A stretch of DNA of 63,481 bases, counting the filler, from Octopus bimaculoides (Eukaryota): NCBI RefSeq assembly GCF_001194135.2. It is 4 parts of 3 records of this genome, joined end to end, with 100 filler letters (N's around TTAATTAATTAA, not from the genome) between each part and the next. Parts side by side here need not be neighbours in the genome. Positions count along the whole stretch, not along the records: positions 29,135 to 60,087 come from NC_068983.1; 3 more parts are not named here. The stretch is one strand, 5' to 3'. The position numbers were made by a program, and so were the translations under genes. A model generated the notes under the pieces. The model ran no database searches. It was not told the origin of the DNA and saw only the letters and a program-made list of their open reading frames with translations. Position 1 is the first letter of the stretch. Every line of letters begins with the position of its first letter. Below, piece after piece: positions 11,542-59,695 of this stretch.

Positions 11542-14500
11542 CTAGCTAAATGTAAAATATTGAATAAGTTGAGTTTGTCAGACACACTTAAACCAATACA
11601 GCATTTTATATTTGACTCAAGCCTCGATAGTTTTAAATATTTTAAATGTGTTAATTTTAAATGTGCTGGTGTATTTAATTATATTTTCTACACGTTAACA
11701 ACGCATCCTAATTAACATATTTCTCTGAAAATAACACTTCAAATCCTCTCCTCTTTCTTTCATCACGCTACACTTCCCATTTTCGTACAATGTGCCAAAT
11801 ATTCTTTCTTTTTCCTAGTGCAATTATTTCTTTGTCCTTGTGCAATTTTTCACAACGTCATTTTTCAAATATCAAACATATATAAATTCTCCTCGTCTTC
11901 ATTAATCTAAGTTTTTTCCTTTTTTTATCATAACATGCATTTCTACGTATTCGGGAAACCTTTTTTTTTTCTCATCACACCGGTTATTGAAAAGATAAAG
12001 CGATGTTTTCCGATGTAAATTAACCTTCAGCTAAAGTAAAAAAGAAAAACGCGTATTTAGGATACTCTACAGCGTTAAAAATTCACACTCAAAATGCAAT
12101 ATGGATGCTCTTTGATAAAAACGAGAAAGCACGAGAAAGAACGAAAGGGAAGTTGTAAAGAAAATATAGATTGATAAAAGAAGAAAAAAGAGAGAGAAAA
12201 GGAGATAAGACATGTAATTTGGATCCGAATAATTGAGTGAAAAGACACAGCACGCTATTCTAGCTTGTTCAATCATCGTATCTTCTGAGGCCTAAAACCA
12301 ATAGTAGCACGCATTTAAAACCTGTGTATGCTTGATTATATATATATATATATNNNNNNNNNNNNNNNNNNNNNNNNNNNNNNNNNNNNNNNNNNNNNNN
12401 NNNNNNNNNNNNNNNNNNNNNNNNNNNNNNNNNNNNNNNNNNNNNNNNNNNNNNNNNNNNNNNNNNNNNNNNNNNNNNNNNNNNNNNNNNNNNNNNNNNN
12501 NNNNNNNNNNNNNNNNNNNNNNNNNNNNNNNNNNNNNNNNNNNNNNNNNNNNNNNNNNNNNNNNNNNNNNNNNNNNNNNNNNNNNNNNNNNNNNNNNNNN
12601 NNNNNNNNNNNNNNNNNNNNNNNNNNNNNNNNNNNNNNNNNNNNNNNNNNNNNNNNNNNNNNNNNNNNNNNNNNNNNNNNNNNNNNNNNNNNNNNNNNNN
12701 NNNNNNNNNNNNNNNNNNNNNNNNNNNNNNNNNNNNNNNNNNNNNNNNNNNNNNNNNNNNNNNNNNNNNNNNNNNNNNNNNNNNNNNNNNNNNNNNNNNN
12801 NNNNNNNNNNNNNNNNNNNNNNNNNNNNNNNNNNNNNNNNNNNNNNNNNNNNNNNNNNNNNNNNNNNNNNNNNNNNNNNNNNNNNNNNNNNNNNNNNNNN
12901 NNNTATATATATATATATATATATATATGAATGCATATATATTATACATATTTGTGCGTGTGCATTTTTGTGTTTGTTTCCAGCCACTGATCAACCGGTG
13001 TTTCTATGATTAATTTCCTTTAATTTTGCAGCCCAGCAAAAATACCGATAGTTTAAATAGCATATTACAAATAGGTAGTGGTCATTTTGACTGACTAAAT
13101 TCTTCCGAGAGATGTCTCAGAACGGCCATAGTCCTCTAAGTATATACACTTATATGTAATTTATCCACACATCTCGTCTGTTATTTATTTACATAAATGT
13201 ATACATACAAATAAACATGCATAGATAGAAATGTTTCCTATGAATATGAGCGTGTGGTAAATAATAATTGCTTATACACTTTGAATATATACAATAGAAT
13301 TACCATTTAAAGAAGATCTTAGCAAAATTCTATTGGCAAAAAGAAACTGGTAAATAACATATGGATTGCGATAACATACGTCGTTGCAAGACAAGAAGGT
13401 GGGTGTCTACTATTACAGGTAGCAAGATTATCAAGAGAAATTCCATTGAACTTATTGGCTTAATTTGACGCCTTTAACCATTTTATAGACAGGGCAAAAT
13501 AGAAACCACTTGAGAAATTATATGAACGTGATGAAGAGCTACTTAAAAATAGAGTATCTTAAGTACTTAAATTGCAACGTAAATTAAATATGCCGACAAA
13601 CTACGTTCATTGGAAATATACTGCTCTCCTTAGCAAAATTAACCAACACAAATGTACAGTATATAACATTATCAATATCTCTCTAGCTCTTGTGCTTGAG
13701 GAAATTATCAAAAAAAGAAGTGCAACCACACGGAAGATGACAGCAATAACATGAAGATAGGATTGCTGCCATTTGAAAGACACGTGCTTACGGACGGAGA
13801 AGGAAAGATACAGTCAGCCAAAAGCAAAACCTATAGAAAAATGTCAAAACACTTTTTCTTCAAATCCACAAATCACTGAGTGAACGATTGAATATAAAAC
13901 GAGTTTTGGAAAAAACCACTCTGACTTGATGTTATCCATAATCAATCAAGTTACTAAAGAAAACCTATCAAAAGTTGAAGTTGATTGTTTTTGGACATCG
14001 ATACCTTATTGTAGTGTGCTGCAATTATCATTAACCAAAAGATGAGAGTAACAAAGATATTCCGAAATGATAGCACACAAAGAAAATGGATCACTCCTTT
14101 CTGAATGAAAATCGACAGACAGTGGAAAAAATTATCAGACAGTTGGAAACTATCATAAGATGCAAAGTAAATAATAAATTCAAGAACACTAGTTGCATCA
14201 TTATCATAAGCTATCCAAGATCTCCGGACGAGGGTCATTCCATGTAAATTTACAAACCTATATGCGAATTATGAAAGTAATTCGTAAAGCTTTATTATAT
14301 CAGAAAATTACAAGAACATTGACCTATTAATCGTAAGTTTGCATTAAACACACAAACTTTATATATTGCAGCTTAGAAGGCCATATTATAAAGGTTGTAA
14401 ATGCTCATCTCGACATGACCTGGATGCATTCTAAGTGAGATTTGGGAAGCAAATAGGCATAAGCATTTCAACCTCTGTGTAATATAGTTTAACGAGTTAC

Positions 14501-29187: not shown

Positions 29188-30587
29188 TTATATATACACG
29201 TGTGTGTATGCATACATGCACACACACACACATATAAATCAGATTTGTTCATTATTTAACATAGACATTCCACAAAGTCATTATGTTAATGATTTCATTT
29301 AACAAGTCAACAAAGCAAGTTTTTGTAAGAGAGAGAGGGTGGGATTTTAATCAACTGATTTGACACAAATATATTACTGGTATCTATTGACTCCACAGAA
29401 TATAGTTTAATGCCTAAGTCAGATAAAGAAAACGTAGTGCTTTCCCATGATATCAGCATTGCCCCACCCCCACCCAAAACAAGTAGATGGAGGTAAAGAA
29501 AAAAGAGGGGTACACTCCACTTAACAGGCTTCTGCATAGTTTCCACCACCTCAATTTCACTCACAAGACATGAGTCAACTGCTAATGGAGAAAACATTTG
29601 CTGAATGTGCCATGCAGGATGCAACCCAGAACCACAGGATTGTGAAATGAACTTTGTAACTACATGAACAAATGCATGAGTCTAGCCTTCTGGGATTTGA
29701 AATCATAATGTAGAGTTTGGAAATTTATATTGTTTGCTTTACTATTTTTTTGCCAATGTATTGCTTTCAATCTTAGTGATTACATTATTAGTTTTAAACT
29801 TGGGCACAAGGCCAGCAATTTCAGGGAGGGGGTAAGTTGATTACATCAACCCCAGTACTCAACTGTTACTTTATCAATTCCCCAAAGGACAGAAGGTAAA
29901 ATCAACTTCCATGGAAATTAAACTCAGCATGCTAACAATTCTGCCAGCTTGCTACCTTATTGATTACATTATTGATGTAAAATAACAAAAACTGTCAATG
30001 GAGCAAAGAATGAACTGCTATGGAGATGCAGTTTATCGGTTTACCTGAATGAATCTATTTTACTTCATTTATGCAACAAATTTCTTTGAGGGTTAGCTAT
30101 GAATGCTACAATATCCTACTTTCTATCCCATAACAATAGAGAAACTTGTGTCTAAACATTAAAGGGAAAACAATACTAATGACATAAAACAAACAAAAAC
30201 CTTTTAAAAATTGTCTTTGTAAATAGCTCTTTTTATATTATCTAATTCTTTATTGCCCACAAGGGGCTAAACATAGAGGGGACAAACANNNNNNNNNNNN
30301 NNNNNNNNNNNNNNNNNNNNNNNNNNNNNNNNNNNNNNNNNNNNNNNNNNNNNNNNNNNNNNNNNNNNNNNNNNNNNNNNNNNNNNNNNNNNNNNNNNNN
30401 NNNNNNNNNNNNNNNNNNNNNNNNNNNNNNNNNNNNNNNNNNNNNNNNNNNNNNNNNNNNNNNNNNNNNNNNNNNNNNNNNNNNNNNNNNNNNNNNNNNN
30501 NNNNNNNNNNNNNNNNNNNNNNNNNNNNNNNNNNNNNNNNNNNNNNNNNNNNNNNNNNNNNNNNNNNNNNNNNNNNNNNNNNNNNNC

Positions 30588-30810: not shown

Positions 30811-32304
30811 TTTTATATTATTAATTAATACATTTATGTGTATATGTGTATGTGTGTGTGAGTGTGCATGCATGTGTGTGCATGTGCACACATGTCTCTG
30901 TGTGTGAAGTTCAATGAAATTATGAAAAGTTTCTTTGGAAAATTGGGGAATTCAGAACCCCATAATGTGTATATGGTACTTTTTTTTACTTCTTGTTATT
31001 CTATAAAATTCCTCCACTAAAATTTCATTAACAGTAGCCACATTCCTTACTTACACGTATATTTTACATATGATACTGAAGCCATGCATATACCACATGC
31101 TTTCACACCTGAATTGATGAAAGTATTATTTCTGCATATAACGATTGACACATTTTCTAGTGTTTTAGTGGAAACTAATCAAATCTTGACATTCATATTT
31201 CAATACATGTCTATAAGTGCTACTAACAGCTTCATATGTTGAGAAATATCTAAAAAATATTCATCAGGCACAAACCACATATCATATGGTGCCTTCTCAG
31301 ATTTTTCACGTTCCTTCTTATTCAATATTTTTTTAGTTCATTACATGTGTTGGGTTTTTAAATAAATACTATATGTGTATGTATGTTTACACACAGACAC
31401 ACACACACACACACACNNNNNNNNNNNNNNNNNNNNNNNNNNNNNNNNNNNNNNNNNNNNNNNNNNNNNNNNNNNNNNNNNNNNNNNNNNNNNNNNNNNN
31501 NNNNNNNNNNNNNNNNGTGTGTGTGTATATATATATATACCCATACATACCATTTAATCTAACTATATACTCTATATATATGTGCATACACACACACATT
31601 TATACATATAAATATACATTTATATGTGTGTGATAGATAGATATACATATATACACATATATTTAGATATATTAATACACACACATACATATGTATGTGT
31701 ATATGTTTGTGTACATATATATGTATGTTAAAGATGCCTTTTTAAAATCTCAATTAGGCATTGAGTATAATATAATTAAGGAAAATACTCAATACATTAT
31801 AGATGCAGAGTCAATATTTCTTGTAATAATTAACATGATACCAAACAATAGTACAAATATTTCTGCATATTCTTGTACCTGGTTAAAAAGACACACAGAG
31901 AAATACACACGCATACACAAACATATGTTGAAACACACACACACAAACATATATACAGTTTTAGGAATGTATGTCTGTGCATGCATGTAATATATGAGTG
32001 CATTAGACAAAATAAATCTATGTATGCATGTGTGCATTTGCATGTATGTAATAAGACTACTTTTCCAATAATTCAAATATTTACCTGTATAATTTTTATG
32101 ACAGGTTTCGCAAAATTATGTTATTGAAAAATTGGCTTGCTTCATTTTTTTTCTCATGAGAATCATTCAAACAATGGACACAATGTGTGTCTGTGTGAAA
32201 GAGAGAGAATATATTTACATGGATAAATTATTATACAGTAATACTATTAAATATCTATTAAAATTATATATGTCTGCACATATATGTCTGCATATATGTG
32301 TGTG

Positions 32305-32807: not shown

Positions 32808-33850
32808 NNNNNNNNNNNNNNNNNNNNNNNNNNNNNNNNNNNNNNNNNNNNNNNNNNNNNNNNNNNNNNNNNNNNNNNNNNNNNNNNNNNNNNNNNNNNN
32901 NNNNNNNNNNNNNNNNNNNNNNNNNNNNNNNNNNNNNNNNNNNNNNNNNNNNNNNNNNNNNNNNNNNNNNNNNNNNNNNNNNNNNNNNNNNNNNNNNNNN
33001 NNNNNNNNNNNNNNNNNNNNNNNNNNNNNNNNNNNNNNNNNNNNNNNNNNNNNNNNNNNNNNNNNNNNNNNNNNNNNNNNNNNNNNNNNNNNNNNNNNNN
33101 NNNNNNNNNNNNNNNNNNNNNNNNNNNNNNNNNNNNNNNNNNNNNNNNNNNNNNNNNNNNNNNNNNNNNNNNNNNNNNNNNNNNNNNNNNNNNNNNNNNN
33201 NNNNNNNNNNNNNNNNNNNNNNNNNNNNNNNNNNNNNNNNNNNNNNNNNNNNNNNNNNNNNNNNNNNNNNNNNNNNNNNNNNNNNNNNNNNNNNNNNNNN
33301 NNNNNNNNNNNNNNNNNNNNNNNNNNNNNNNNNNNNNNNNNNNNNNNNNNNNNNNNNNNNNNNNNNTATATATATATATATATATTACATAAATGAAATG
33401 CATGATGACTCTTCATTTTTACTGGCACCAACTAATTTTCCTCATTAAGACTTGGAAATGACAGTGTTACCATACATTTCATTTGAATGAAATAGTTAGA
33501 CTCTACATCTCTATTGAGTTTTCAGACAGAATGACAGTGATTTTAAGGCTCCTTAGAAACACTCACACCTTGCCGTGTGTGTATGTAGGTGTGTAGTGTG
33601 TATGTGTGTGTGTATGGATATATAGGTATAGGTATAGACATATAGATATAGATATAGGGATTCAATTCTGCTCCTCAGTGTTTCAATCTTTCCTATCCTT
33701 GCATATTTTTGCTTGAAATCTGGCTGACACTTCTTTCTGTCAGAGTTCATCAGCTACGAATCTAAGAAACCCTATGTGCTAAATATTTTTGTTGTAATTC
33801 TGCTTCATTTTTTGTTTGGAGCACTTTATATATATATATATATATATATA

Positions 33851-35231: not shown

Positions 35232-35431
35232 TTAAGACATCTGCATGTGATATTTCTGGCATTGGTTATTCCAATTTGGTTGATGTCCATTGCTTGGATG
35301 GTGACGGCATTCTCCATTATTCACAGTTTGAGGATTCACAGGTGACAATGAAATTTCTGACAGCAAGCCAGGTATTAAAGACTCCTTATTGTTCTGGACT
35401 TTTAAAGGTGCCATCTGCTTCTGGTTGTAGC
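35232..35431 (-). CDS. Candidate terminal coding exon of the p75NTR-like gene: (C)YNQKQMAPLKVQNNKESLIPGLLSEISLSPVNPQTVNNGECRHHPSNGHQPNWNNQCQKYHMQMS*
   Basis: Acceptor taatttttctttattacag|GC. The phase-1 junction with exon 37602-37841 (T+GC=Cys) is in frame with the supplied ORF 35232-35414. No strong GT donor precedes the TAA. Unique, non-repeat sequence. Confidence 0.62.
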
Positions 35432-35480
35432 CTGTAATAAAGAAAAATTAAGAAAAATAATTAAAATATATGCATATATA

Positions 35481-35890
35481 GGCGCAGGAGTGGCTGTATT
35501 GTAAGTAGCTTGCTTACCAACCACATGGTTCCGGGTTCAGTCCCATTGCGTGGCACCTTGGGCAAGTGTCTTCTACTATAGCCTCGGGCCGACCAAAGCC
35601 TTGTGAGTGGATTTGGTAGACGGAAACTGAAAGAAGCCCATTGTATATATGTATATATATATATGTGTGCGTGTGTGTGTGTGTTCGTGTGTCTGTGTTT
35701 GTCCCCCCACCATCGCTTGACAACCGATGCTGGTGTGTTTACGTCCCCGTAACTTAGCGGTTCAGCAAAAAGGGACCGATAGAATAAGTACTAGGCTTAC
35801 AAAGAATAAGTCCTGGGGTCGATTTTCTCGACTAAAGGCGATGCTCCAGCATGGCCGCAGTCAAATGACTGAAACAAGTAAAAGAGTAAA
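35481..35890 (+). mobile_element. tRNA-derived SINE family B, near full length
   Basis: ggcgcaggagtggctgtattgtaagtagc (A-box-like), ggttccgggttcagtccc (B-box-like), body cgaccaaagccttgtgagtggatttggtagac, tail gactgaaacaagtaaaagag. Further copies at 35920-36080, 40046-40425, 43366-43612 (-), 44552-44955, 45025-45175 and 59790-60000 (-). Confidence 0.85.
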
Positions 35891-37601
35891 AGAGACAGTA
35901 ATGAGTATATACCCAGGTACAGATGTGGTTGTGTAGGTTAAAAAATTTCCTTCCTGATCACATGGTTTCAGGTTCAGCCCCACAGCGTGGTACCTTGGGC
36001 ATTTGTCTTCTACTGTAGCCCTAGACTGACAACAGCTATGAAAATCATTTTGAATAGATAGAAACTAAAAGAAGCCCTGTGTGTGTGTGTGTATGTGTGT
36101 GTGTGTGTGCGCGCGCATACACGCGTGTGCATGTGTTTTGTTTTTCTGTCTTCTTGTTTTGATATTATGTTATAGTTGTAAATGAGTGTCAGTCATACAA
36201 GAAGAATCATTCATTTCCAATATTCTGAAAACACATGTCTGGTTATGGGCAAATATTACTTTGCTTGGAAACATGTTAGAGTTGGTAACAGGAATGGCAT
36301 CCAGCCATAGAAAATCTTCTTCACTGTGCTCCATCCAACCCATGCAAGCATGAAAAAGCGGATGTTAAAATGATGGTGATGTTGACAATGACAACAAAAC
36401 TAGCAATGACAAATGGGTTCAGTATGAAGTAGTACAGCTTAAATAGGTTATTTAGCAAGCACTCATATAGCTAATGTTTCCAAGCAAAGTATATAATTCT
36501 CAGGTGCACTACAGTACATTAGAAGTTACCATCTTTTATCAAAATATTTCTGCACGATTCTAATTACACATATTTAAACTATTCTTCTGTCTTGAACTAT
36601 AAAGAAAATTAAAAAAAAACGTGGAGCCTCAACTCTGACCTGCTAAAAACAGTAACTAACTTCCTTCAAATTCAACTTGGGTAAAATAGACCTGAATATA
36701 CACTGTCTGCAAAAAGATGGGACAGTCACAACTTGATTGCTTTCAATCATATAAATAATAAATAAATGCGCCCTTTTAAAGCCTAGCCAGGCTCATGGGC
36801 CCAGTTTCCCGGTTTCAATGGCGTATGTGTTCCCCAGCTGGACGGGCCGCCAGTCCATCACAGCGTTACTCATTTTTGCCAGCTGAGTGGACTGGAGCAA
36901 CGTGAAATGAAGTGTTTTGCTCAAAAACACAACGCGTCGCCTGGTCCAGGCATCAAAACCACAATCTTACGATCATGATGCTGATACCCTAACCACTAAG
37001 CCACACACCTCCATTTTCAATCATATAGGTCTGCTCAAATCAGCTCTGGCCTGAGACCAAACCACACCAACAACAGAAACAACATAGAGTTTAACTGAAT
37101 ATTTTAACATACCAAGCTTACTTTCTATTTTTGGATAATTAAAAAATATTTAAGTAAGACTTAAAATGTGAATGAAAGACAAAGGAAACTCTTCAAAAGT
37201 GATTCAAAGAATGACTATATAAGAAATAAACTATAGGGAATGGAATGACAATATGTAAATCAAAATAAACAATATATAATAAGCTGTTGAAAGTCAAACG
37301 AAAATCCTAATATAATTTCTAAGCCAAAAGACAAATGTCTATTGATTGCATTTGATATTTTAACCTTTTAAACAGACTTCATCTTGTTACTTTGGCAACT
37401 TCAGATCTTTACATAGTTTTAATGTTACTTCACACATCAACATATAGAAACTAATAAATGCAAAATGATCAGTCATGAGGGAGGGCAGAATTAAATGATT
37501 CATTGCTATTCAAACATAATGCAGCACATGTTAAAAATGTACGCAATGCTAGACTTCAAAAAATATAAAAATGATCGAGTGAAAATGTTTGATCTACTCA
37601 C

Positions 37602-37841
37602 ATGTTTTAATGCCTGAGTCATCATAGACAATACCACTATCTCTTCCAGAAGCTTTAGAATATTCCACATCTTCATGCATAGCATTGTCTCTAGCACCAA
37701 GCCTTTTGTTACGCTGACGTTGGCAGTGTTTATAAATTGCAAAGCCACATAGGCCACATACAACTGCACCAAGCAGGGCACAATAAATTGGAATTACATC
37801 AATGCGCGTTTCTTCATAACGGCTTGCATAACCTTTGCCAG
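37602..37841 (-). CDS. NGFR: Internal exon of a p75 neurotrophin receptor / TNFRSF16-like gene: stalk end, transmembrane helix, juxtamembrane cytoplasmic region
   Basis: Acceptor ttcttattttgcag|CT and donor ACAT|gtgagt; 240 bp, phase 1/1. The peptide GKGYASRYEETRIDVIPIYCALLGAVVCGLCGFAIYKHCQRQRNKRLGARDNAMHEDVEYSKASGRDSGIVYDDSGIKT aligns by eye to human p75 NLIPVYCSILAAVVVGLVAYIAFKRWNSCKQNKQGA...HSDSGISVDS. The symbol denotes likeness; orthology is not proven. Confidence 0.85.
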
Positions 37842-38696
37842 CTGCAAAATAAGAAACCATATTTGAAATATATTTTTCAAACAACCATTATATATATACT
37901 TCTGGATTCAGTCAATAAAAAAATCAAAGAAAGAAAGAAAGCAGGTTTATATACAAGAAATAATAGGGTATGCAATAGATAATAAATAGGAGAGCTACCC
38001 AGTGATAGAAATTAGCCCTTTATGCATGGTCACAGTTCAGATAGATCATTAGAGTGCAGACCTACTGGCAGAAGTGGAAGGTTACTGCCAACACAGTGCT
38101 GTAAAGCCATGAGACTGCCATTGACTAAGTTTATTTTGATGTGAGGCTGCTGTCCCCTTTGAATGGGTTACAGTAGTTTTTCTGAAACAATTACCAAAAA
38201 AAAAAAAAAAAATCTATAAATCTCTCTTAATATGTAAAAATGTTCATGGATATGTTATACAATAATCCATAAGGGCTAAAACACATTTACTGCAAACAAA
38301 ACTGGGATGAAAAGTATCAAATAGTTAAGCTTTTGATTTAACTCTTTAGCTTTCAAACTTGTATATCCAGCTCAGCTATTCTAGCTGTTTTATGTTTAAA
38401 CTGCTAGATCCAATCTTTCACACCTACTCTACAATATCATTCTAAAAATGTACAATTGTGTCATTGGAGTCTTGAAGTTATGAGATAATGTATAATTAAT
38501 TGTAAAAAAATAAGTATAATAAATAAGCTTTACATCCAAAAGGGAATCTGAATGCCAAATGATTAAGTATTTAAAAACATGGGTCTTGGAGAAATATTGA
38601 TTTGCAAAATTGTGTTGAGAAGAGATNNNNNNNNNNATAAGTAAAAAAAGAAAGTTATTCATTTATATATATATATATATATATTGAAGAAGAAGA

Positions 38697-38764: not shown

Positions 38765-40539
38765 TTGTTTTTTGGTATCTCTTATGATGGATAAGACCAG
38801 GTACATAAATAGCTGGTCAAGCATCTTGTGTGACATTTAGCTTTTCATTTACCAATTCAATACCAGCTGAAATAAAGAGTGATATGGATTTGAAGAGCTT
38901 TGGAGGAAAAACACAAGAAAGTTAAAAAATGTGATCAGATGAGCTACTATACTAAATTAGTTTCAATTCACCACAGAATCTTCTTAACTATTTGACCATG
39001 CTGCTTCTAAATCACACCACAAGTAAAAGAAGTTTGTGGGAGAACATTGATTTCGACTTTAGAGCAATTAATTGATCTGTAAGTTGTATCCATTATCCAT
39101 TTATATTAGGCTTTGTATTTACCTGGAGAAGGCAACTACATCAATTCTCTTTTCTGACTCAGAAGAAGTTACAGCATAGAGCTGTTACTTATCTTTGGTT
39201 TCTGTAGTGATTATGTTGTTGAGAACTGTATTTCTCTCTATAATGGGATGTTTAGTCTATTACAAACAGCTTTTAACATTAAATTTGGTACAACAAACTA
39301 ACAAGTCATAGAAGAGTGCTGAAGTTTGTTTGAAGCATTGCAGAGGGAGAGGGGGAGGGTAGAGAGAGAAAGAGAGAGCATACAGTTATTAGATAACTCT
39401 AGGTCAGTTGTGTCATTTGAGAAAAATTTAGTTGCTATTTCTAGCAGGTTGGCTGACTGTATAGAGACTCCATTGTCGGCTGATATAAGACAGTGCACAA
39501 CAGAGGGCAGCAGGTTAACTGGCAATCACAAGTAAAATTTACAGTTCAGACATTTGTAGAGACCTCATTTTCTGTGTTATTTTAGTGTGTCACCAATGAA
39601 AGATTATTAATCTGTCAGCTACTTTAGCTCTTTAAACAAAAATCAAACTATCTTCTCTCTCTTCTCTCCGCAGCAATGTGTTTAGTTGAATGAGAAATCT
39701 TTTCGGTGATGTCCATTTCTACTATTTTGAAAATGTTTATTACCTTATTTTCTTTTTACTAATAGCTGTTAACAGCTTGTACACATTTGACCTTATAAAC
39801 AAGAAAATACACATGGACACTTTCTACAACATAAATTATTTCACTTGACTTTATGAAACAAGAAAATATGAATGTACATTCTCACAAGACATTGTGCACA
39901 CCTAACTTTATAGCAATATTGAGTATTAATGTATTTTTTAGAGTTGTATTTACAAATCATGTGTTGTATTATTATCAATGAATTATTGTACCAACAAGAC
40001 AGGAAGAGGTCTATACAATTAAAGGGAAAATTATGCATAATATAGGCACAGGTGGGGCTGTGTGGCAGGAAGTTTGCTTCACATACACATGGTTCAGAGT
40101 TCAGTTCCACTGCACAACACCCTGAGTAAGTGTCTTCTCCTACAGCTTCATTCCAAACAAAGCCTTGTGAGGGGATTTAGTAGACAAACTGAAAGATGTG
40201 GATATATATATGTGTATGTATCTTTGAGTTAGTTTGTTTTGCACCACCAGCATTAGTTTGTTTACATCCTCATAATTTAATGATTTGGCAAAAGAGACCT
40301 ATAAAATAAATACCAGACTTTAAAAAAATAAGTACAGGGGGTTGATTTGTTCAACTGAAACCCCTCAAAGTGGTGCCCCAGCATCGCCACAGTCTAATGA
40401 CTGAAACAAGTAAAGGGTAAAAGATAAAAGAATTCATCATTATTGTTATCCCACCAATACTTTGGAAACAGCCTAAATTGAGAAAGACTTGAAAATCAAC
40501 GTAAGATCGTAATGATGTAAAGTAAATATAACAAATAAT

Positions 40540-42500: not shown

Positions 42501-43411
42501 ATCATAATATATATATATATATATATATATCAAATGTATCTGTAGGTATATAAGCATGTGTGTGCATATAACTATATATATATAGAAATGTTTGTGTATA
42601 TATATGTGTGTGTGTATATATGTATAGGTATATATATGTGTGTGTATATATATATATATATGATACACGTATATACATACACACACGCATACGTCTGTTT
42701 ATATATTTTAGATTAGTTTGATTTTTTCACGCAACAAAACATCTCATCTCACTGTAATTTCAAAAGTGCACACCTTTCACTATAATTATATTTTAGAATA
42801 TCTTGGCTTTGGAAATTTTTTCACACGTGTATATAAAAAAAAAAAAAAACATGCGTGTTTGTGTGTGTGAGTATGCATGTTTATATTTTATACATATGTA
42901 TATCCATGCATATGTGTGACTGTATACATGTGTGTGTGTGTGTGTGTGTGTGTGCATGTGCATGAGTATAGATAGGTATATGTAAATTTATATATTACAG
43001 ATACACAGATGGATAGATATTTACACATAGAAATATATTTATCTTTATAAATATATATATATATATATATATATACATCTCTTAATCCTTTTTGCTCCAT
43101 GTGGAGCATAGGGCCTCAACAGTTATTTTCCACTTTTTGTGGTCATTGGCGTGTTTCTTGGCTGCTTTCCCATGTCAGGCCGGTGGTCCTGAGCTCATCC
43201 AAAATACTCCGCTTCCATATCTGTTTTGGGCGTCCTCGCTTCCTTTTCCCCTGCGGGTTCCAGTCAGGTGCATGTCATGTCACATTTGAGGGTTCTTTCC
43301 ACAGTGTGTGTCCAATCCATCTCCATTTCCTTTGTCTAATCTGAACATGTATCAGCTCATTGGTTGTCAAGTGATGTTGGGGGGGACAAACACAGACACA
43401 CAAACATACAC

Positions 43412-43448
<37 letters not shown>

Positions 43449-44252
43449 CGACAGGCTTTTTTCAGTTTCCGTCTACCAAATCCACTCAAAAGGCTTTGGT
43501 CGGCCCGAGGCTATAGTAAAAGACACTTGCCCAACGTGCCACGCAGTGGGACTGAACCCAGAACCATGTGGTTGGTAAGTAAGCTACTTACCACACAGCC
43601 ACTCTTGTGCCTATAAACATATATGTGTATATACATTTAAATAAAGATGTATTATTACCGTTATTAATGATATTAATAAGGTAACAATAAGATGGCTAAA
43701 TTAATACCACTTGCTAAAATCAGAGCCAAGACTTCGAAACCACGAGAAACTCACTATAAACATACACATGAGCAATGCAATGAACATATGAGAAATAGGT
43801 TTACCTTTGCGCTGAATACATTAGTAAGTAAAGTACATTTCAATACCAATTGACTTCACCCTCTGTATGACCAACATACTGTGGGATCTTCAGTTGAAAA
43901 TAACATTTTAATATCTATTTCTAAAATATTCACTACATTAGCTCGTGTACATTCCTTGCTTAAAACACACACACACACAGACATAGGCTCATCCTTTGCA
44001 ACCCTTTCAAGTTGAGCATCCCTAATGTGGGGTTGTGCTGGTGCTGGTGCTGGTGCTGGTGCCACGTAAAAAGCACCTGTGCTAGTGCTGCTTTAAAGCA
44101 CCCAGGATATTCTGTAATGTGGCTGGTATTAGGAAGGGCATCCAGCCATAGAAACCATGCAAAAACAGACATGGTCCCTGAACAGCCCTTCAGCTGGTCG
44201 GCTCTTGTCAAACCATCCAACCCATGCCTACATGGGAAATGGATGTTAAATC

Positions 44253-44393: not shown

Positions 44394-46529
44394 CAAATGT
44401 CTAATCATTATGTGAATTCACATAAAAATATTGTTATAAATGATGTTTATGATCTCACTGATAAGATTTTTAAAACTGTTACAGAAAGAGCAAAAAAATG
44501 AGTATAGGCATAATTAATGATTTAATTAAGCAAATAATTTAGAAATAATAAGCATGGCTGTGTGGTAAGAAGCTCGCTTCCCAACCACATGGTTCCAGGT
44601 TCACTACCACAGTGCCACCTCAGACAAGTGCTTTCTACTATAGCTTCGGGCTGACAAAAGACCAAAGCCTTGTGAGTGGATTTGGTAGGTAGAAACTCAA
44701 AGAAGCCCATCACAGACACACACACACACACATATATATATTTGTGTGTGTGTCTATGTTTGTCTTCCACCACTGCTTGACAACTAGTGTTGGTGTGCTT
44801 ACATCCCCCATAACATAGGAGTTCAGCAAAAGAGGCTGATAAAATAAGTACCAGGCTTAAAGAATAAAAAGTACTGGGATTGATTCATTCGACTAAAATT
44901 CCTCAAGGCAGTGCCCCAGCATGGCCACGGCCTAATAACTGAAACAAGTAAAAGAATAAGAAAATTGAAATATCTCTTTGTTTTGTTTTAAATATATTTT
45001 TTTAAATATTGGTATACATGCATGCCTGGATGGTTCAGAAGCATGCTTCGCAACCATGTGGTCTAGGGTTCAGTCCCACTGACTGGCATCTTGGTTAAGT
45101 GTCTTCCACTATAGCCCCAGGCCAACCAAAGCCTTGAGTGGATTTGCTAGACAAAAACTGAAAGAAGCTTGTTGTGCATGCGTATGCATGTGTGCATGTA
45201 CATCTGTGTATGCATGCACGCATGTGGGTGAGTGTGTATAATTGTCAAAACTCTGGATTTTTGTGGATTTCAAGTCAATGAGGAAACATCTACCTAGTTG
45301 CTCAATGTGCTAGAAATTGCAATCAAATGTCTCTAGAATCACTTCTTAACAATTTACAAGATTTTCTCTTGTAGTTCTATTCAGTCAAGGCTGATCTGGG
45401 ACTAAAGGTTATGTTAAACTTTTCATAAGTAGAAAGAAGTTTTTTATGTTAACATTTAGATGATATGTAAAGAAAGATTAAGGTAGCACAAGCTAGCAGA
45501 ATCATTAGTGTACTGGGTAAAATGTTTAGTGGCATTTCATCAGTTTTTATTTTCTGAGTTAAATTCCACCTGAGTCAACTTTGCCTTTCATCCTTTCAGG
45601 GTTGATAAAATAAGTACCAGTGAAACACCGGAATCAATAAAATAAGTACAAGTTGGGCATTGATGTAATTGTCTTACCCTTCCCTGAAATTGCTGGCCTT
45701 GTGCCAAAATTTGAAACCAATATGTAAAGAAAGATTTGAATTCCTAATCAGTGAGTCAAATTGTTGATTGCTTTCAATGAAACAGAATTTATTTATTTAT
45801 TTATCTATTTATTTATTTATTTGTTTGTTTAGCAATTTTAGTTAAGTAAAATAGATGCCAATGATGTTGGGGAATGTTGTCTGCAGCACTGAATGGATTA
45901 CGATTTTACATAGAAAGGGAGTTATCTTTTACCTCCTAGACAGAATATTATGAAATCTGAAGCTAAGCACTTGCCTTATGAGTCCTAGTGGACATGGAGA
46001 AGAGGACTTCACTAGGAAATATTTACTTTAATTTACCAACAGAATAGAGCAAAATATTACACTACTAAATGTTATCTTCCATCATTTCTGGCATCTCCTT
46101 TCCAATGAAATGCATATATGGAGATTGGTTTGATCTTTTTGACCTTCAAACATTCTGATGATCAAATGATTGACTTTTGTAGCAATCAATCGCATAAAAC
46201 CTTATACATTACATATAATACATAAAAGCCTACCCTATGTCATTGTTACAATACATCACACATCATTTATAACAACCACCAACGACCAACACTCACACCA
46301 CTGTTGACCTTCAACAACAATAATGTGCAACACATCTTCCTCTATCACCATAATATCCCTACACTTGATCAATCACCCCCACTCATAACATATCACTTAA
46401 TATAACAACCTATCATGTTATTCTACCTTAATACATCATTCTTTACCACCACACAAAACCACCCCATCCTACATCAATAAAATACACCACCACTGTATAT
46501 ATCGCCCTCTATTACCACTGTGACAATGA

Positions 46530-52720: not shown

Positions 52721-54049
52721 GAATATGATCATCATTGGGATATGACTCTGGAGGAAGCAATTGCAACAAATTCTGCAAAACAAGTCAGAGATCTGTTTGC
52801 AGATCTTCCCACTCAGGGTCAAGGGCAGCTTTTAAACTAATCCAGAATACTTTTAAATCAACTAAACCGTCACCCTGTGATAATAGATTGCCTTAATTAT
52901 GGACACTACATTAACACAGTGCCCACAATGGGATACGAACTACAACACCATTTCACCAAATAACTACTACAATTAATGCTACTACTACTACTGCTATATT
53001 CGGGCATCTGCAATTCAAGCATCGACTCACCACTAATCTTTTCCACCAATCATATAAATCAAAGCTGTCAATCGGTTCAAAAGAGGAAAATCCTTTATTA
53101 AAAGGCAAGGAATAGCATTAAGTGGTTAACTCTCAACCCAATAAAGAATCATTACCATTGTTATTAATTCGTCTTCATTAGCACAAACACACACACACAC
53201 ACACAAACATGATACGGAAGAAAGCGTGCACATTTGCATGCATGCGTGCATGAGCCTCAGCATATAAATGACTATATACATACATACACACATACACACA
53301 TACACATATACATACATACATACATATATACACTGATACTGATGTACATGCCTGCATGCGCGAATGGTAGACTCTAACTAATGTGTTGATTATAATAATT
53401 TACTAACTATAAGGCTGCCACTCCGAAAGTGTAGGAAATATGGTATCGTCACTAGCCTTCCCATTGTACTGATTTGTTAGTTTCTGAATCAGCTCTGATA
53501 GCTTTCATCAACTGCTGTGATCAAAGAATACATGCAATAACCGCTTAACATAGAGAAAAGAGTGCCTTTTGTTATAACACCGCTTTAATATCAATGTAGA
53601 GTGTTGTTGTTGTTGTTATTATTATTATTGCCTTTTATCCATCAAACGGTCGATAATATAAACAGTAGTAATGCACTTGAGCCGATTAAACTGACGTCAC
53701 CCTCTTCTCTCTTCTTGCTCGATTGCTCAATCAAAAGAAATCATCATCATCAGCATCACCATCATCATAAAATGTATCATCATCATTATCATCATCACCA
53801 TTATTAATTATTAATACTGAAGCTGGTGGTGGAGGGTGTAGTGGTGGTGGTGGTGGTAGCGGTGGCTGTGGTATGCATGATGGTTAGGTTTTTCTTAGCG
53901 CAACCAAACTTTATTATGTCAGCTAGTTTCGATTCTCCATCAGATCCGATTCACTTATGTCATTTGATAAATGCATATACCCTTCGAGGAAAGGCATCAA
54001 ATGTTATCATGGCCACCTGTCTGAATCCCATAATCAATCCAATGCTTAG

Positions 54050-54490
54050 TTGTCACCAGCATCACCTCTATTACCATCACCACTACTACTGCCATTACTA
54101 TCACCACCAGCACCACTGCCATCAGCACCACCTCTATTACCATCACTACTACCACCACCACCACCATTACCGCCATCAACACTACATCTATTACCACCAG
54201 TGCCACTACAATCACCACTGTCATTTCTATTACCACCACTCCACTACCACTACCACCACTACTACTACTACCACCACTACTACTACCACCACTATCACTA
54301 CCAGCACGACCATCAACACTACCTCTATTACCATCACCACCACCACTACTACTGCTACTACTGCTGCTACTACTACTACTACTACCACTACCACCACCAC
54401 CACCATGACCATCAACACTACCTCTATTACCACCAGCACCAGTTGCCACCGCTAAAGCCACCACCACCGCCGCCACCACCACCATCATAA
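54050..54490. repeat. Complex (ACC/ACT) trinucleotide repeat with a recurring ccatcaacactacctctattacca unit
   Basis: Direct reading; the unit recurs about five times. Confidence 0.9.
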
Positions 54491-56408: not shown

Positions 56409-56802
56409 CAAGGGGGAAGTAATTATTGCTTGATCGTTTATATTTCTATGTAATACCATATGATCAATGTATTGATGATGTTCATTATTTGAGTTATGTA
56501 ATAGGTACAATAAAGGTTAACTCTAAGCTTTCATCAGACGGAAGTTATCTAGATAAGAGAGAGGTATGTATGTTTTTGTTTTTATTTTATTTATTTATTT
56601 TTTTTAATGAAATGGTTCTTCCCACTGATTTTTCATCAAATGATACGAAAACTTTCCAGAACATTACGTGATTATGAAGCCAACAACAGAATAGTTAGTA
56701 TTAATGGGTGTTCAACACAGCTAAATGTTGTTGTCTGAGTGTATATTCTAAGAGAATCGATCTAATGAAGGAAATAATGAAATAAAACAATTTTTAATAA
56801 TA

Positions 56803-56835
<33 letters not shown>

Positions 56836-58328
56836 TTATAACAACTTTCATTCAGAAGAAAGATTTTCTTTCAAGTTTTGTGTGAATAGCAAGTTGACAC
56901 GTCAAAGCTATAGTGTGACTGCCATAACAGCTACCACCAGCGCCGACTGGCGGTTTTTGATAGAGGCTCCCTGGCAGCCGCCATAAATCGGTCCCTTTTA
57001 TCTTTGTTTGATGTCGGTTGAAAGGATAGGGCCAACGTCGATTAAAACAAACAAGATAATCTTCAGTACAAGCAGACCTATTCATAATGTATTCCACAGA
57101 AGTTGATCAAAAGAACAGCTTCACATATCGGAATTAATTCGCTCTATTATTTTGGTGCTATCTTTGAATTTTCGGTTGGGTTAGGGAGAAAATATTTTCA
57201 CTAAACAACACTTTGATTATAAAATGTATGCAGTTGTTTTTCTTCTATTTTTATTCTCCATTTTCTATTTAATTCTATGTTTCTCATACAATTTCTCTAT
57301 GTGTGATCGCATATGAATCAAAAAAGCCAATATGTACGTTTTTGCCATACGAACTACTCACAAGCGCATCTATTACCTTTCATATGCATACAAATTTACA
57401 AGTATGCCTATATTCTGCTGTCAGATAAAATATCCGTCGATAAAAATAAAATATAAAAATTGATTAATAACTATAACAAAATAAAACAAACAAAAAAAAC
57501 AGAAGGGAAAACGACCACCACTGATTTAATTCCAACTTTTAATCGGCAGATCAGAAGATAGATTAAAACTAGTAGGGGTGCATGATTAAAGCTAAGCGTA
57601 TCTGGATGGTTCAAAGTAACTTAGAAATTCCGAAATAAAAATAAAAAGTCGATTGCGTGTAAAGGAAACGAGCTGCTAGTTATAACCTCTTGTTAGTTTA
57701 TAATATAATCAGTCTTGCATTATTATTTGGACGGCTGGAGTAACGAGCGCTTTGGAACAGACGTAAGTTTTGAGCGAGCAGAACCTGCAAATGTAGTTTC
57801 GATTTTCACTCAGAACCATTTCACAGGACTCATGACCATAATACTCTTCCACCCATATCCTACACAAATGTTTTTTGACTGAGTTAGAAATGCCAGCAAA
57901 AAATCTCTCACATATCTCTTAAAATGCAAAGCACATACTGGTAAAGTCCCAGATACCATATGTCAGAAACAAAAGGCGGAATGATCATGATTGGAATGCC
58001 TTCAACCAAAAGTCTGCTTGATCTTCTCTGGGGTTAAAAACAACAATAACAATACACTTTGACGTTTTATAACTTTCAGGTAAAAGTACTCAACGGACAC
58101 AGTGATAAATAATGTACAGTTGAAGTAAGTTCTGCGAAAAGTGACTATACTATCTGGTTTCGATTCTTGCTTGAAATAATTTCATTTCAATCATTTTGAC
58201 AGACATATGTAAAAGGTGCAAAACATCACAACTATGTTCATCCAGGTCAAGCACATTCCAGTTTCAATTTACAATAAATTATGTTCGGTTAGTATTCATT
58301 TATTTATATTCTGCCAAATCTTCTAAAC

Positions 58329-58699: not shown

Positions 58700-59695
58700 A
58701 CACTCATCTCTCACCATCCTGATATTTAAACCTTTCTCTCTTTCTCTCCACTACCATAACGTTGAACCTTTCGCTCCTTCCTCTCTGCCATCGTGATAAT
58801 ACACCTCCCTCTCCTTCATAGCCATCAGCATGACATCACACTTTCCTCGCTCTTTTCTTCCCTTCTGTCATCATGACATTACACCCTTCCTCTCCCTTAC
58901 TGTCACCATGACATTACACTCCACTTAACTTTATCTCACCATGATATTACATCTTCCGCACCTCTCCACTATTATTATGACGTAACATCTTCATCTTCTT
59001 CACTATCATTAAGACATATTACCATCCTCTCCTCCACCGTCGCTATGATATTAGGCTTTCCTCTCCTCCACCGTCATTATATTAGACCTTCTTCTCCTAC
59101 ACTGTCATTATGATATTTTACCTTCCTCTTCTCCAACGTCATTATATTAGACCTTCCTCTCCAAGTGACATGATATTAGACCTTCTTCTCCTCCATCGTC
59201 ATTATATTTGATCTTCCCCTCCTCCGCCGTCATTATGTTAGACCTCCCCCCTCCACCGTCATTATATTAGGCCTTCCCTCCCTCTACTGTCACATTAGAC
59301 CTTCCCTTGCTCCGCCGTCATTACGATATTTGACCATCCTCTCTTCCACTGTCATTATGATATAAGACCTTCCTCTCCTCCAACATCTTATAATATTAGA
59401 TCTTCCTTTCCTCCACCGCCATTACATTTGACCTTCCTCTCCTCCACTATCATTATGATGTTAGACCTTTCTCTCCTCTACCGTCATAATGACGATCATT
59501 ATGATATTTTACCTTCCCCTGCAGCATCGTCATTATATTAAACCTCCTCCACCATCATCATTATTATCATATCAAATTTTCTCCTTCACCATCGTCATTA
59601 TATTTGTCCTTTCCCCTACTCCCCAATCATCATGATATTAGACCTTCCTCTCTTCCACCGTCATTATGACATAATGCCTTCCCCTCACCCCTCTC
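58700..59695. repeat. Degenerate minisatellite, unit accttcctctcctccaccgtcattat(gat)attag (31 or 34 bp)
   Basis: About 25-30 diverged copies by eye; best conserved at 59020-59500, eroding toward 58700. Confidence 0.88.

Follow-up and report, generated by a model that had tools for sequence, protein, structure and literature searches.

A p75NTR-like receptor gene of Octopus bimaculoides and its octopod orthologues, which appear to have lost the death domain

Octopods probably possess a p75NTR-like receptor devoid of a death domain; judged from their sequences, both the death domain and the C-terminal x-x-V motif appear to have been lost in this lineage. The gene was encountered in Octopus bimaculoides (assembly GCF_001194135.2) within a window of 63,481 nucleotides, i.e., the whole stretch of DNA analysed, filler included, along which all positions are counted. 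Positions 29,135-60,087 of this window (record NC_068983.1) are referred to as the piece in the following. The exon at 37602-37841 very probably belongs to the octopus orthologue of the molluscan p75NTR-like TNF receptor, of which it encodes the transmembrane and juxtamembrane regions. Receptors of this type carrying the transmembrane signature are already documented across invertebrates, molluscs included, where they were described as p75NTR-like ('PITA') receptors in which the TMD-Chopper region is conserved (bioRxiv 10.1101/2021.12.26.474206). The octopus gene itself is already annotated as TNFRSF16 or TNFRSF16-like, and the identity of the exon is thus already known. What may be new is limited to the octopod orthologue apparently without death domain, unlike all other molluscan orthologues checked.

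The exon encodes a short remnant of the stalk, the transmembrane helix and the juxtamembrane region (Table 1). A preliminary description of the DNA had pointed to a peptide in which P-x-Y-C and AxxxG motifs are followed by a basic stop-transfer and by DSGI; the peptide was indeed found on the minus strand, with exactly the exon limits proposed there. The basic segment KHCQRQRNKRL is followed in the exon by HEDVEYSKASGRDSGIVYDDSGI, i.e., a DSGI-type motif is present behind the stop-transfer, and DSGI occurs in two copies. On the acceptor side, AG (37843-37842) stands after a pyrimidine run, and on the donor side GT (37601-37600) forms part of GTGAGT starting at 37601. A split codon contributes one base at either end of the exon, resulting in phase 1/1. 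In-frame translation of 37603-37839 (minus strand) yields GKGYASRYEETRIDVIPIYCALLGAVVCGLCGFAIYKHCQRQRNKRLGARDNAMHEDVEYSKASGRDSGIVYDDSGIKT, and the open frame including this peptide spans 37594-37884 (minus strand). Limits and phases of the exon are identical in Argonauta and in a clam contig.

Table 1 Features of the TNFRSF16-like gene region in the piece at 29,135-60,087 of the window
Feature	Positions	Strand	Remarks
Terminal coding exon, (C)YNQKQMAPLKVQNNKESLIPGLLSEISLSPVNPQTVNNGECRHHPSNGHQPNWNNQCQKYHMQMS followed by stop	35232-35431	-	AG 35433-35432; TAA stop 35232-35234
Intron, transmembrane exon to terminal exon	35432-37601	-	2170 nt; GT 37601-37600, AG 35433-35432
Penultimate coding exon of the octopus TNFRSF16-like (p75NTR-like) gene	37602-37841	-	240 nt, phase 1/1
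Juxtamembrane segment	37609-37731	-	KHCQRQRNKRL, HEDVEYSKASG and two copies of DSGI
DSGI motif, two copies	37630-37641 and 37609-37620	-	
HEDVEYSKASG	37645-37677	-	conserved
KHCQRQRNKRL	37699-37731	-	basic stop-transfer
Transmembrane helix VIPIYCALLGAVVCGLCGFAIY	37732-37797	-	aligned with p75NTR structures 2mic and 5zgg and with NRADD 6hj7
A-V-V-C-G (AxxxG motif)	37753-37767	-	motif coordinates verified
Cysteine of P-I-Y-C	37780-37782	-	equivalent of human Cys257; motif coordinates verified
Codons of extra cysteines C28, C31 and C39 of the exon peptide	37753-37755, 37744-37746 and 37723-37725		AVVCGLCG...KHC
Conserved flanks of the transmembrane exon	37438-37601 and 37842-37881		~160 nt beyond the donor, ~40 nt ahead of the acceptor; Octopus versus Argonauta
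3' part of the very large intron, cysteine-rich-domain exon to transmembrane exon	37842-60087	-	
Intronic blocks collinear and conserved with Argonauta hians	56749-57599, 53466-53577 and 53032-53180		
SINE-like repeat, core ~95 nt	35543-35643, 40117-40196, 43449-43545, 44612-44714 and 45084-45177		
SINE-like repeat, longer copies	35434-35702 and 43390-43658		inverted
Minisatellite and CAC/CAT/CCA-rich tract	58945-59690 and 54050-54460		period ~34 nt, C/T-rich unit
Assembly gaps (N runs)	30289-30586, 31417-31516, 32808-33366 and 38627-38636		

Homology searches consistently led to the p75NTR/NRH-type family that had been suggested from the motifs: (i) the 79-aa exon peptide matches Pfam TNFR_16_TM (PF18422) with 30.4 bits (E = 4.4e-7), above the curated cut-off (gathering score) of 25.6 bits, the remaining Pfam matches (K1, DUF1677) representing weak noise; (ii) a PDB sequence search with the exon returned four matches only, namely the p75NTR transmembrane structures 2mic, 5zgg and 2mjo (the latter a Cys-to-Ala mutant) and NRADD (6hj7), with which the exon aligns column for column over IP-x-YC...AVV-x-GL (VIPIYCALLGAVVCGL in octopus versus LIPVYCSILAAVVVGL in 2mic and 5zgg); and (iii) the transmembrane exon alone was matched when the piece was searched by tblastn with an approximate human p75NTR query. 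A profile composed of the exon and one clam exon match retrieved 92 family proteins at E <= 1e-3 from 1.84 billion protein representatives. Named members among them are Saccoglossus NP_001161625.1 ('p75 neurotrophin receptor-like protein') and Lingula XP_013381112.1 as well as proteins of Priapulus, Tubulanus, Diadema, Anneissia and Branchiostoma. Each of the ten members scanned has the p75 transmembrane domain, accompanied by a death domain, by TNFR cysteine-rich repeats or by both. Among representatives with the transmembrane signature, the transmembrane Cys is present throughout (81/81), the G of AxxxG in 75 and the A in 58 of the 81; DSG[IVL] occurs in 58 of 77 family representatives, and HEDVEYSKASGxDSG(I/V) is common to the octopus, bivalve and gastropod orthologues.

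The clam exon was the one match of a word-index protein search (sparse index) with the exon peptide. It is located at 1304-1606 of a 2-kb contig from JGI metagenome 3300049158 and represents the TNFRSF16-like transmembrane exon of Ruditapes philippinarum. The coding part is identical to XP_060553237.1, and its phase-1 boundaries are the same as those of the octopus exon. The contig is host (animal) DNA inside the metagenome.

A short hydrophobic segment is prone to spurious similarity, and the next Pfam matches of the exon are weak noise, such that a chance match, an unrelated single-pass membrane protein or a dead (pseudogene) exon had to be considered. Chance and pseudogene are refuted by Pfam, PDB, annotated proteins and dN/dS, and we regard this whole group of explanations as extremely improbable: the exon scores above the curated Pfam threshold, its PDB matches are confined to p75NTR and NRADD, and in annotated proteins it is joined in frame to four TNFR cysteine-rich domains. 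Moreover, its reading frame is intact with dN/dS 0.25 and dS 0.30 between Octopus and Argonauta (dN/dS values here and below being derived from 55-79 codons), and its limits and phases are conserved out to a bivalve.

Octopus-Argonauta conservation also extends beyond both splice sites, the transmembrane exon and its flanks together comprising 470 nt at 77 % identity, and this exon has a dS of 0.30, half the value obtained for the tail exon (0.66). Flank conservation and low dS hint at an extra constraint on the transmembrane exon at the nucleotide level, e.g., for splicing control. The region of the helix is further distinguished by three octopod-specific cysteines located within and just past it. 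The first and third of them are kept in Argonauta, the second being replaced by Trp. A cysteine directly ahead of the AxxxG glycine is found in 1 of 81 family representatives.

In accordance with the cephalopod-like genome proposed at the outset, the exon is 100 % identical to 323-aa TNFRSF16(-like) proteins of O. vulgaris, O. bimaculoides and O. sinensis. CAI9719777.1 is named 'tumor necrosis factor receptor superfamily member 16-like [Octopus vulgaris]' (323 aa) and shares a 90 % cluster with XP_052822182.1 (O. bimaculoides), XP_029634100.1 (O. sinensis) and UniProt A0A0L8ICB2. The latter is a 152-aa model ('TNFR member 16 transmembrane domain-containing protein'), the start of which (MVSYFAAGKGY) is translated intron sequence of the present region. 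The name TNFRSF16(-like) is also used in the annotation of Argonauta hians. In tblastn, residues 178-258 of CAI9719777.1 map to 37842-37600 with 100 % identity and residues 257-323 to 35435-35235; a split codon (T|GC, Cys) connects the transmembrane exon with the terminal exon. Transcription and the splice from the transmembrane to the tail exon are read from public gene models and are to be taken at that level.

Residues 1-177 (signal peptide and four cysteine-rich domains) had no match in the piece by tblastn, and upstream exons were likewise absent from it in tblastn searches with the full Octopus protein and five mollusc orthologues. Their absence is due to the large size of the gene, which extends over ~146 kb in O. 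vulgaris and in Argonauta includes an intron of 70 kb. By these sequence comparisons, the piece is considered to hold just the last two coding exons of the TNFRSF16-like gene. No Pfam family was assigned to the other long open frames of the piece, and neither a ligand gene nor a Trk gene was found in it.

The rest of the piece consists of intron, microsatellites and SINE-like repeats. Within the large intron, three blocks are collinear and conserved with the corresponding intron of Argonauta hians, the largest (56749-57599; 863 nt) being 73 % identical, with roughly 85 % identity in its core. A conserved open frame is lacking in this block, the indels of which do not come in multiples of three, and it has no Rfam match. 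Judged by their conservation, the three blocks may represent conserved non-coding (regulatory) elements of the TNFRSF16-like gene. The SINE-like repeat is present in at least 5 copies in the piece and at least 7 in the Argonauta locus (75-92 % identity), and one longer copy (~35434-35702) adjoins the acceptor of the terminal exon inside the last intron. ARAGORN detected no tRNA-like structure in this repeat, and tRNA and Rfam scans of the piece and of the conserved intronic block yielded zero matches. In addition to the minisatellite there is a long CAC/CAT/CCA-rich tract, on either strand of which open frames of 120-215 codons arise spuriously, and (TA)n and (CA)n runs are numerous throughout the piece.

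The complete gene structure is apparent in Argonauta hians, the orthologue of which is 83 % identical, has the same architecture (p75 transmembrane domain and four TNFR repeats according to Pfam) and a recognisably conserved tail. Its four coding exons correspond to (i) the signal peptide, (ii) the four cysteine-rich domains, (iii) the transmembrane region and (iv) the tail, with introns of 70 kb ahead of the transmembrane exon and 1.1 kb ahead of the tail exon. All four cysteine-rich domains are held by a single exon of ~530 nt (13441-13970 of the fetched locus), unlike vertebrate NGFR, in which the cysteine-rich domains are split over two exons.

Scanning of the annotated full-length Octopus protein (CAI9719777.1) against Pfam revealed four TNFR_c6 domains and TNFR_16_TM. 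The 323-aa protein is organized as a type I single-pass receptor with a signal peptide, four cysteine-rich domains and a p75-type transmembrane helix, continued by the basic stop-transfer, the lophotrochozoan-conserved HEDVEYSKASGxDSG(I/V) and a tail of ~65 aa. Best PDB sequence matches of the ectodomain are the p75NTR structures 3buk, 1sg1 and 3ij2 (E about 1e-20). The AF2 model shows an ectodomain with pLDDT ~90, a helix at residues 194-230 and an unstructured stretch at residues 229-323 (pLDDT < 50), the model being weak for the intracellular part with an alignment depth of 7 sequences. In Foldseek, the top four matches are p75NTR complexes with NT-3, NGF or proNGF, the best ones being the same entries as in the sequence search, with target-normalised TM-scores of 0.85-0.87, rmsd of 1.7-2.7 Å and 34 % identity, versus TM-scores <= 0.74 for the other receptors listed (CD40, DcR3, DR6, RANK and others). 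The predicted fold of the octopus ectodomain is thus nearest to that of the p75NTR ectodomain. In a neighbour-joining tree of 41 family members, built without bootstrap support from proteins retrieved by the transmembrane-exon profile only, the octopods are sister to the bivalve and gastropod TNFRSF16-like clade on a long branch; octopod and gastropod proteins share 37-42 % identity. By sequence, the octopus receptor belongs in the p75NTR/PITA lineage.

The intracellular part sets the octopod proteins apart. Pfam Death was found in none of three octopod proteins scanned (O. vulgaris, O. bimaculoides and Argonauta), and the intracellular sequence of the O. sinensis model is identical to that of the scanned Octopus proteins. 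In contrast, Pfam Death is present in all ten other scanned family members that include the C-terminal region, a set comprising, among others, Ruditapes, Mya, Pinctada, Mytilus, Crassostrea, Patella and Babylonia; the death domains of Nucella and Pomacea were taken from precomputed Pfam matches. The C-terminal x-x-V motif is absent in octopods as well, Octopus ending with ...HMQMS and Argonauta with ...NQWQK, whereas most other full-length family members end in V, and the molluscs in HVV, NMV, QVV, NIV, QMV or NVI. At the genomic level, an intracellular-domain/death-domain HMM built from 42 p75-family intracellular domains detected the transmembrane exon only, both in six frames of the piece and in six frames of the Argonauta locus (95 kb, of which 10 kb lie beyond the stop). 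No death domain or remnant of one was found in the piece by tblastn with mollusc proteins.

Instead, octopods share a tail of ~65 aa, conserved between Octopus and Argonauta and predicted to be disordered (AF2 pLDDT < 50, no secondary structure). Its exon shows 83 % nucleotide identity between the two genera at dN/dS 0.17 and dS 0.66. Because of this dN/dS value, the tail is regarded as constrained coding sequence rather than a mis-called exon. The tail has no Pfam family match, and a word-index protein search with the tail alignment gave zero matches, the index being so sparse that the Octopus protein itself was missed too. The start of the tail (NNKESLIPGLLSEISL) was also considered as a relic of death-domain helix 1; this candidate was dismissed, as the resemblance appears in a MAFFT alignment alone and the HMM provided no statistical support.

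The 323-aa models could also be truncated or represent a short isoform of a canonical p75NTR-like receptor, with one or more death-domain exons located further downstream, beyond both the piece and the 10-kb flank of Argonauta. Introns of octopod genes are very large, as evident from the ~146-kb gene of O. vulgaris and the 70-kb intron of Argonauta, the 3' flank searched in Octopus comprises 6.1 kb past the stop with ~1 kb of that in three N gaps, and the death domain is present in every other mollusc orthologue checked. We nevertheless judge this explanation unlikely, since the models of four species from several annotation sources end in the same exon, and since the tail exon is conserved at the protein level (dN/dS 0.17, as above), its stop codon hardly differing in position. 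Furthermore, neither the 95-kb Argonauta sequence nor the present piece contains any death-domain signal, and the annotations of O. vulgaris and Argonauta show no further gene within 10 kb. Cephalopods may conceivably possess a second paralogue with a death domain.

We lean, with modest confidence, towards the view that in Octopus and Argonauta an ancestral p75NTR-like death receptor was remodelled into a receptor without death domain, while the ectodomain, the transmembrane Cys and the juxtamembrane motif were kept. That the lineage-specific, constrained and disordered tail together with the extra transmembrane cysteines replaces the death domain and the x-x-V motif is a part of this reading that we hold to be somewhat favoured. 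No relevant paper on octopus or cephalopod p75, NGFR or TNFRSF16 was found in the searchable library, and for this reason the octopod form without death domain may be unreported.

Vertebrate p75NTR (NGFR/TNFRSF16) and the octopod protein have in common (i) four cysteine-rich domains, p75NTR representing the nearest predicted fold, (ii) the transmembrane signature I-P-x-Y-C...A-V-V-x-G-L, including the Cys that is mutated in 2mjo, and (iii) the basic stop-transfer and the juxtamembrane DSGI motif. They differ in that the octopod protein has neither the death domain nor the C-terminal motif of the S-P-V type, and in its intracellular part of ~100 aa (versus ~150 aa) with a disordered, octopod-specific tail. 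Further differences are the extra cysteines in the transmembrane region (AVVCGLCG...KHC), the lack of a long Ser/Thr-rich stalk and, in Argonauta, the single exon for the cysteine-rich domains.

With the molluscan TNFRSF16-like/PITA receptors (Ruditapes XP_060553237.1, Crassostrea virginica XP_022325103.2, Patella XP_050418854.1 and Pomacea), the octopod protein shares the architecture through the juxtamembrane region, HEDVEYSKASGxDSG(I/V) as well as limits and phases of the transmembrane exon; the bivalve and gastropod proteins checked possess both a Death domain and an x-x-V end, the octopod proteins neither. NRADD (NRH2) has a near-identical transmembrane signature (NIIPVYCALLATVILGLLAYVAFKCW), and its structure 6hj7 is the second-best PDB match of the exon. 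However, NRADD combines a death domain with the absence of cysteine-rich domains, and the octopod protein shows the reverse. Other invertebrate and deuterostome p75NTR-like proteins (Saccoglossus, Lingula, Priapulus, Diadema and Branchiostoma) match the same exon profile and carry the transmembrane Cys signature, but their intracellular domains comprise ~140-170 aa.

In vertebrate p75NTR, an intermolecular disulfide formed by the transmembrane Cys is required for neurotrophin binding to be relayed to the intracellular domains, whilst the AxxxG face has a part in intramembrane cleavage as well as in helix packing. By analogy, the transmembrane Cys probably keeps the octopus receptor as a disulfide-linked dimer, and binding of a ligand to the cysteine-rich domains would be relayed via the transmembrane helices to the intracellular part. 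Because there is no death domain, output would have to proceed via the juxtamembrane region (cf. the 'Chopper' segment and adaptor sites of p75NTR), the lineage-specific tail or partner receptors. The octopod protein may act mainly as a ligand-binding co-receptor.

The ligand could be neurotrophin-like, CRNF-like or TNF-like. Assignment to neurotrophin-type signalling, as envisaged in the preliminary description, is weakened because the octopod protein has neither the death domain nor x-x-V, and a TNF-family protein is an equally conceivable ligand. In that case, the octopus protein would recognise a ligand of the TNF superfamily instead of a neurotrophin and act in immunity, apoptosis or stress, its p75-like features reflecting the ancestral state of all TNFRs. 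In Drosophila, Wengen and Grindelwald bind the TNF Eiger. Both are placed in the fly TNFR system as descendants of a p75NTR-like receptor located at the root of all TNFRs in the PITA study (10.1101/2021.12.26.474206), and by sequence the octopus ectodomain is just slightly nearer to p75NTR than to OPG (E = 6e-21 versus 1e-19). On the other side, the predicted fold of the ectodomain is clearly nearest to neurotrophin-bound p75NTR (TM-scores as given above), and apCRNF, a neurotrophic factor of Aplysia, binds mammalian p75NTR (PMC3966541); CRNF of Lymnaea, as cited in the same article, was isolated through interaction with p75NTR. A TNF-superfamily ligand is considered possible rather than probable.

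Irrespective of the ligand, a receptor remodelled as proposed here would, if true, represent a natural 'death-domain-deleted' p75 receptor, from which it may be learned which p75 functions need the transmembrane and juxtamembrane module alone. It would also help to work out neurotrophin or TNF signalling in cephalopod nervous systems, and would imply a different wiring of p75-type signalling in those invertebrates that have the largest brains.
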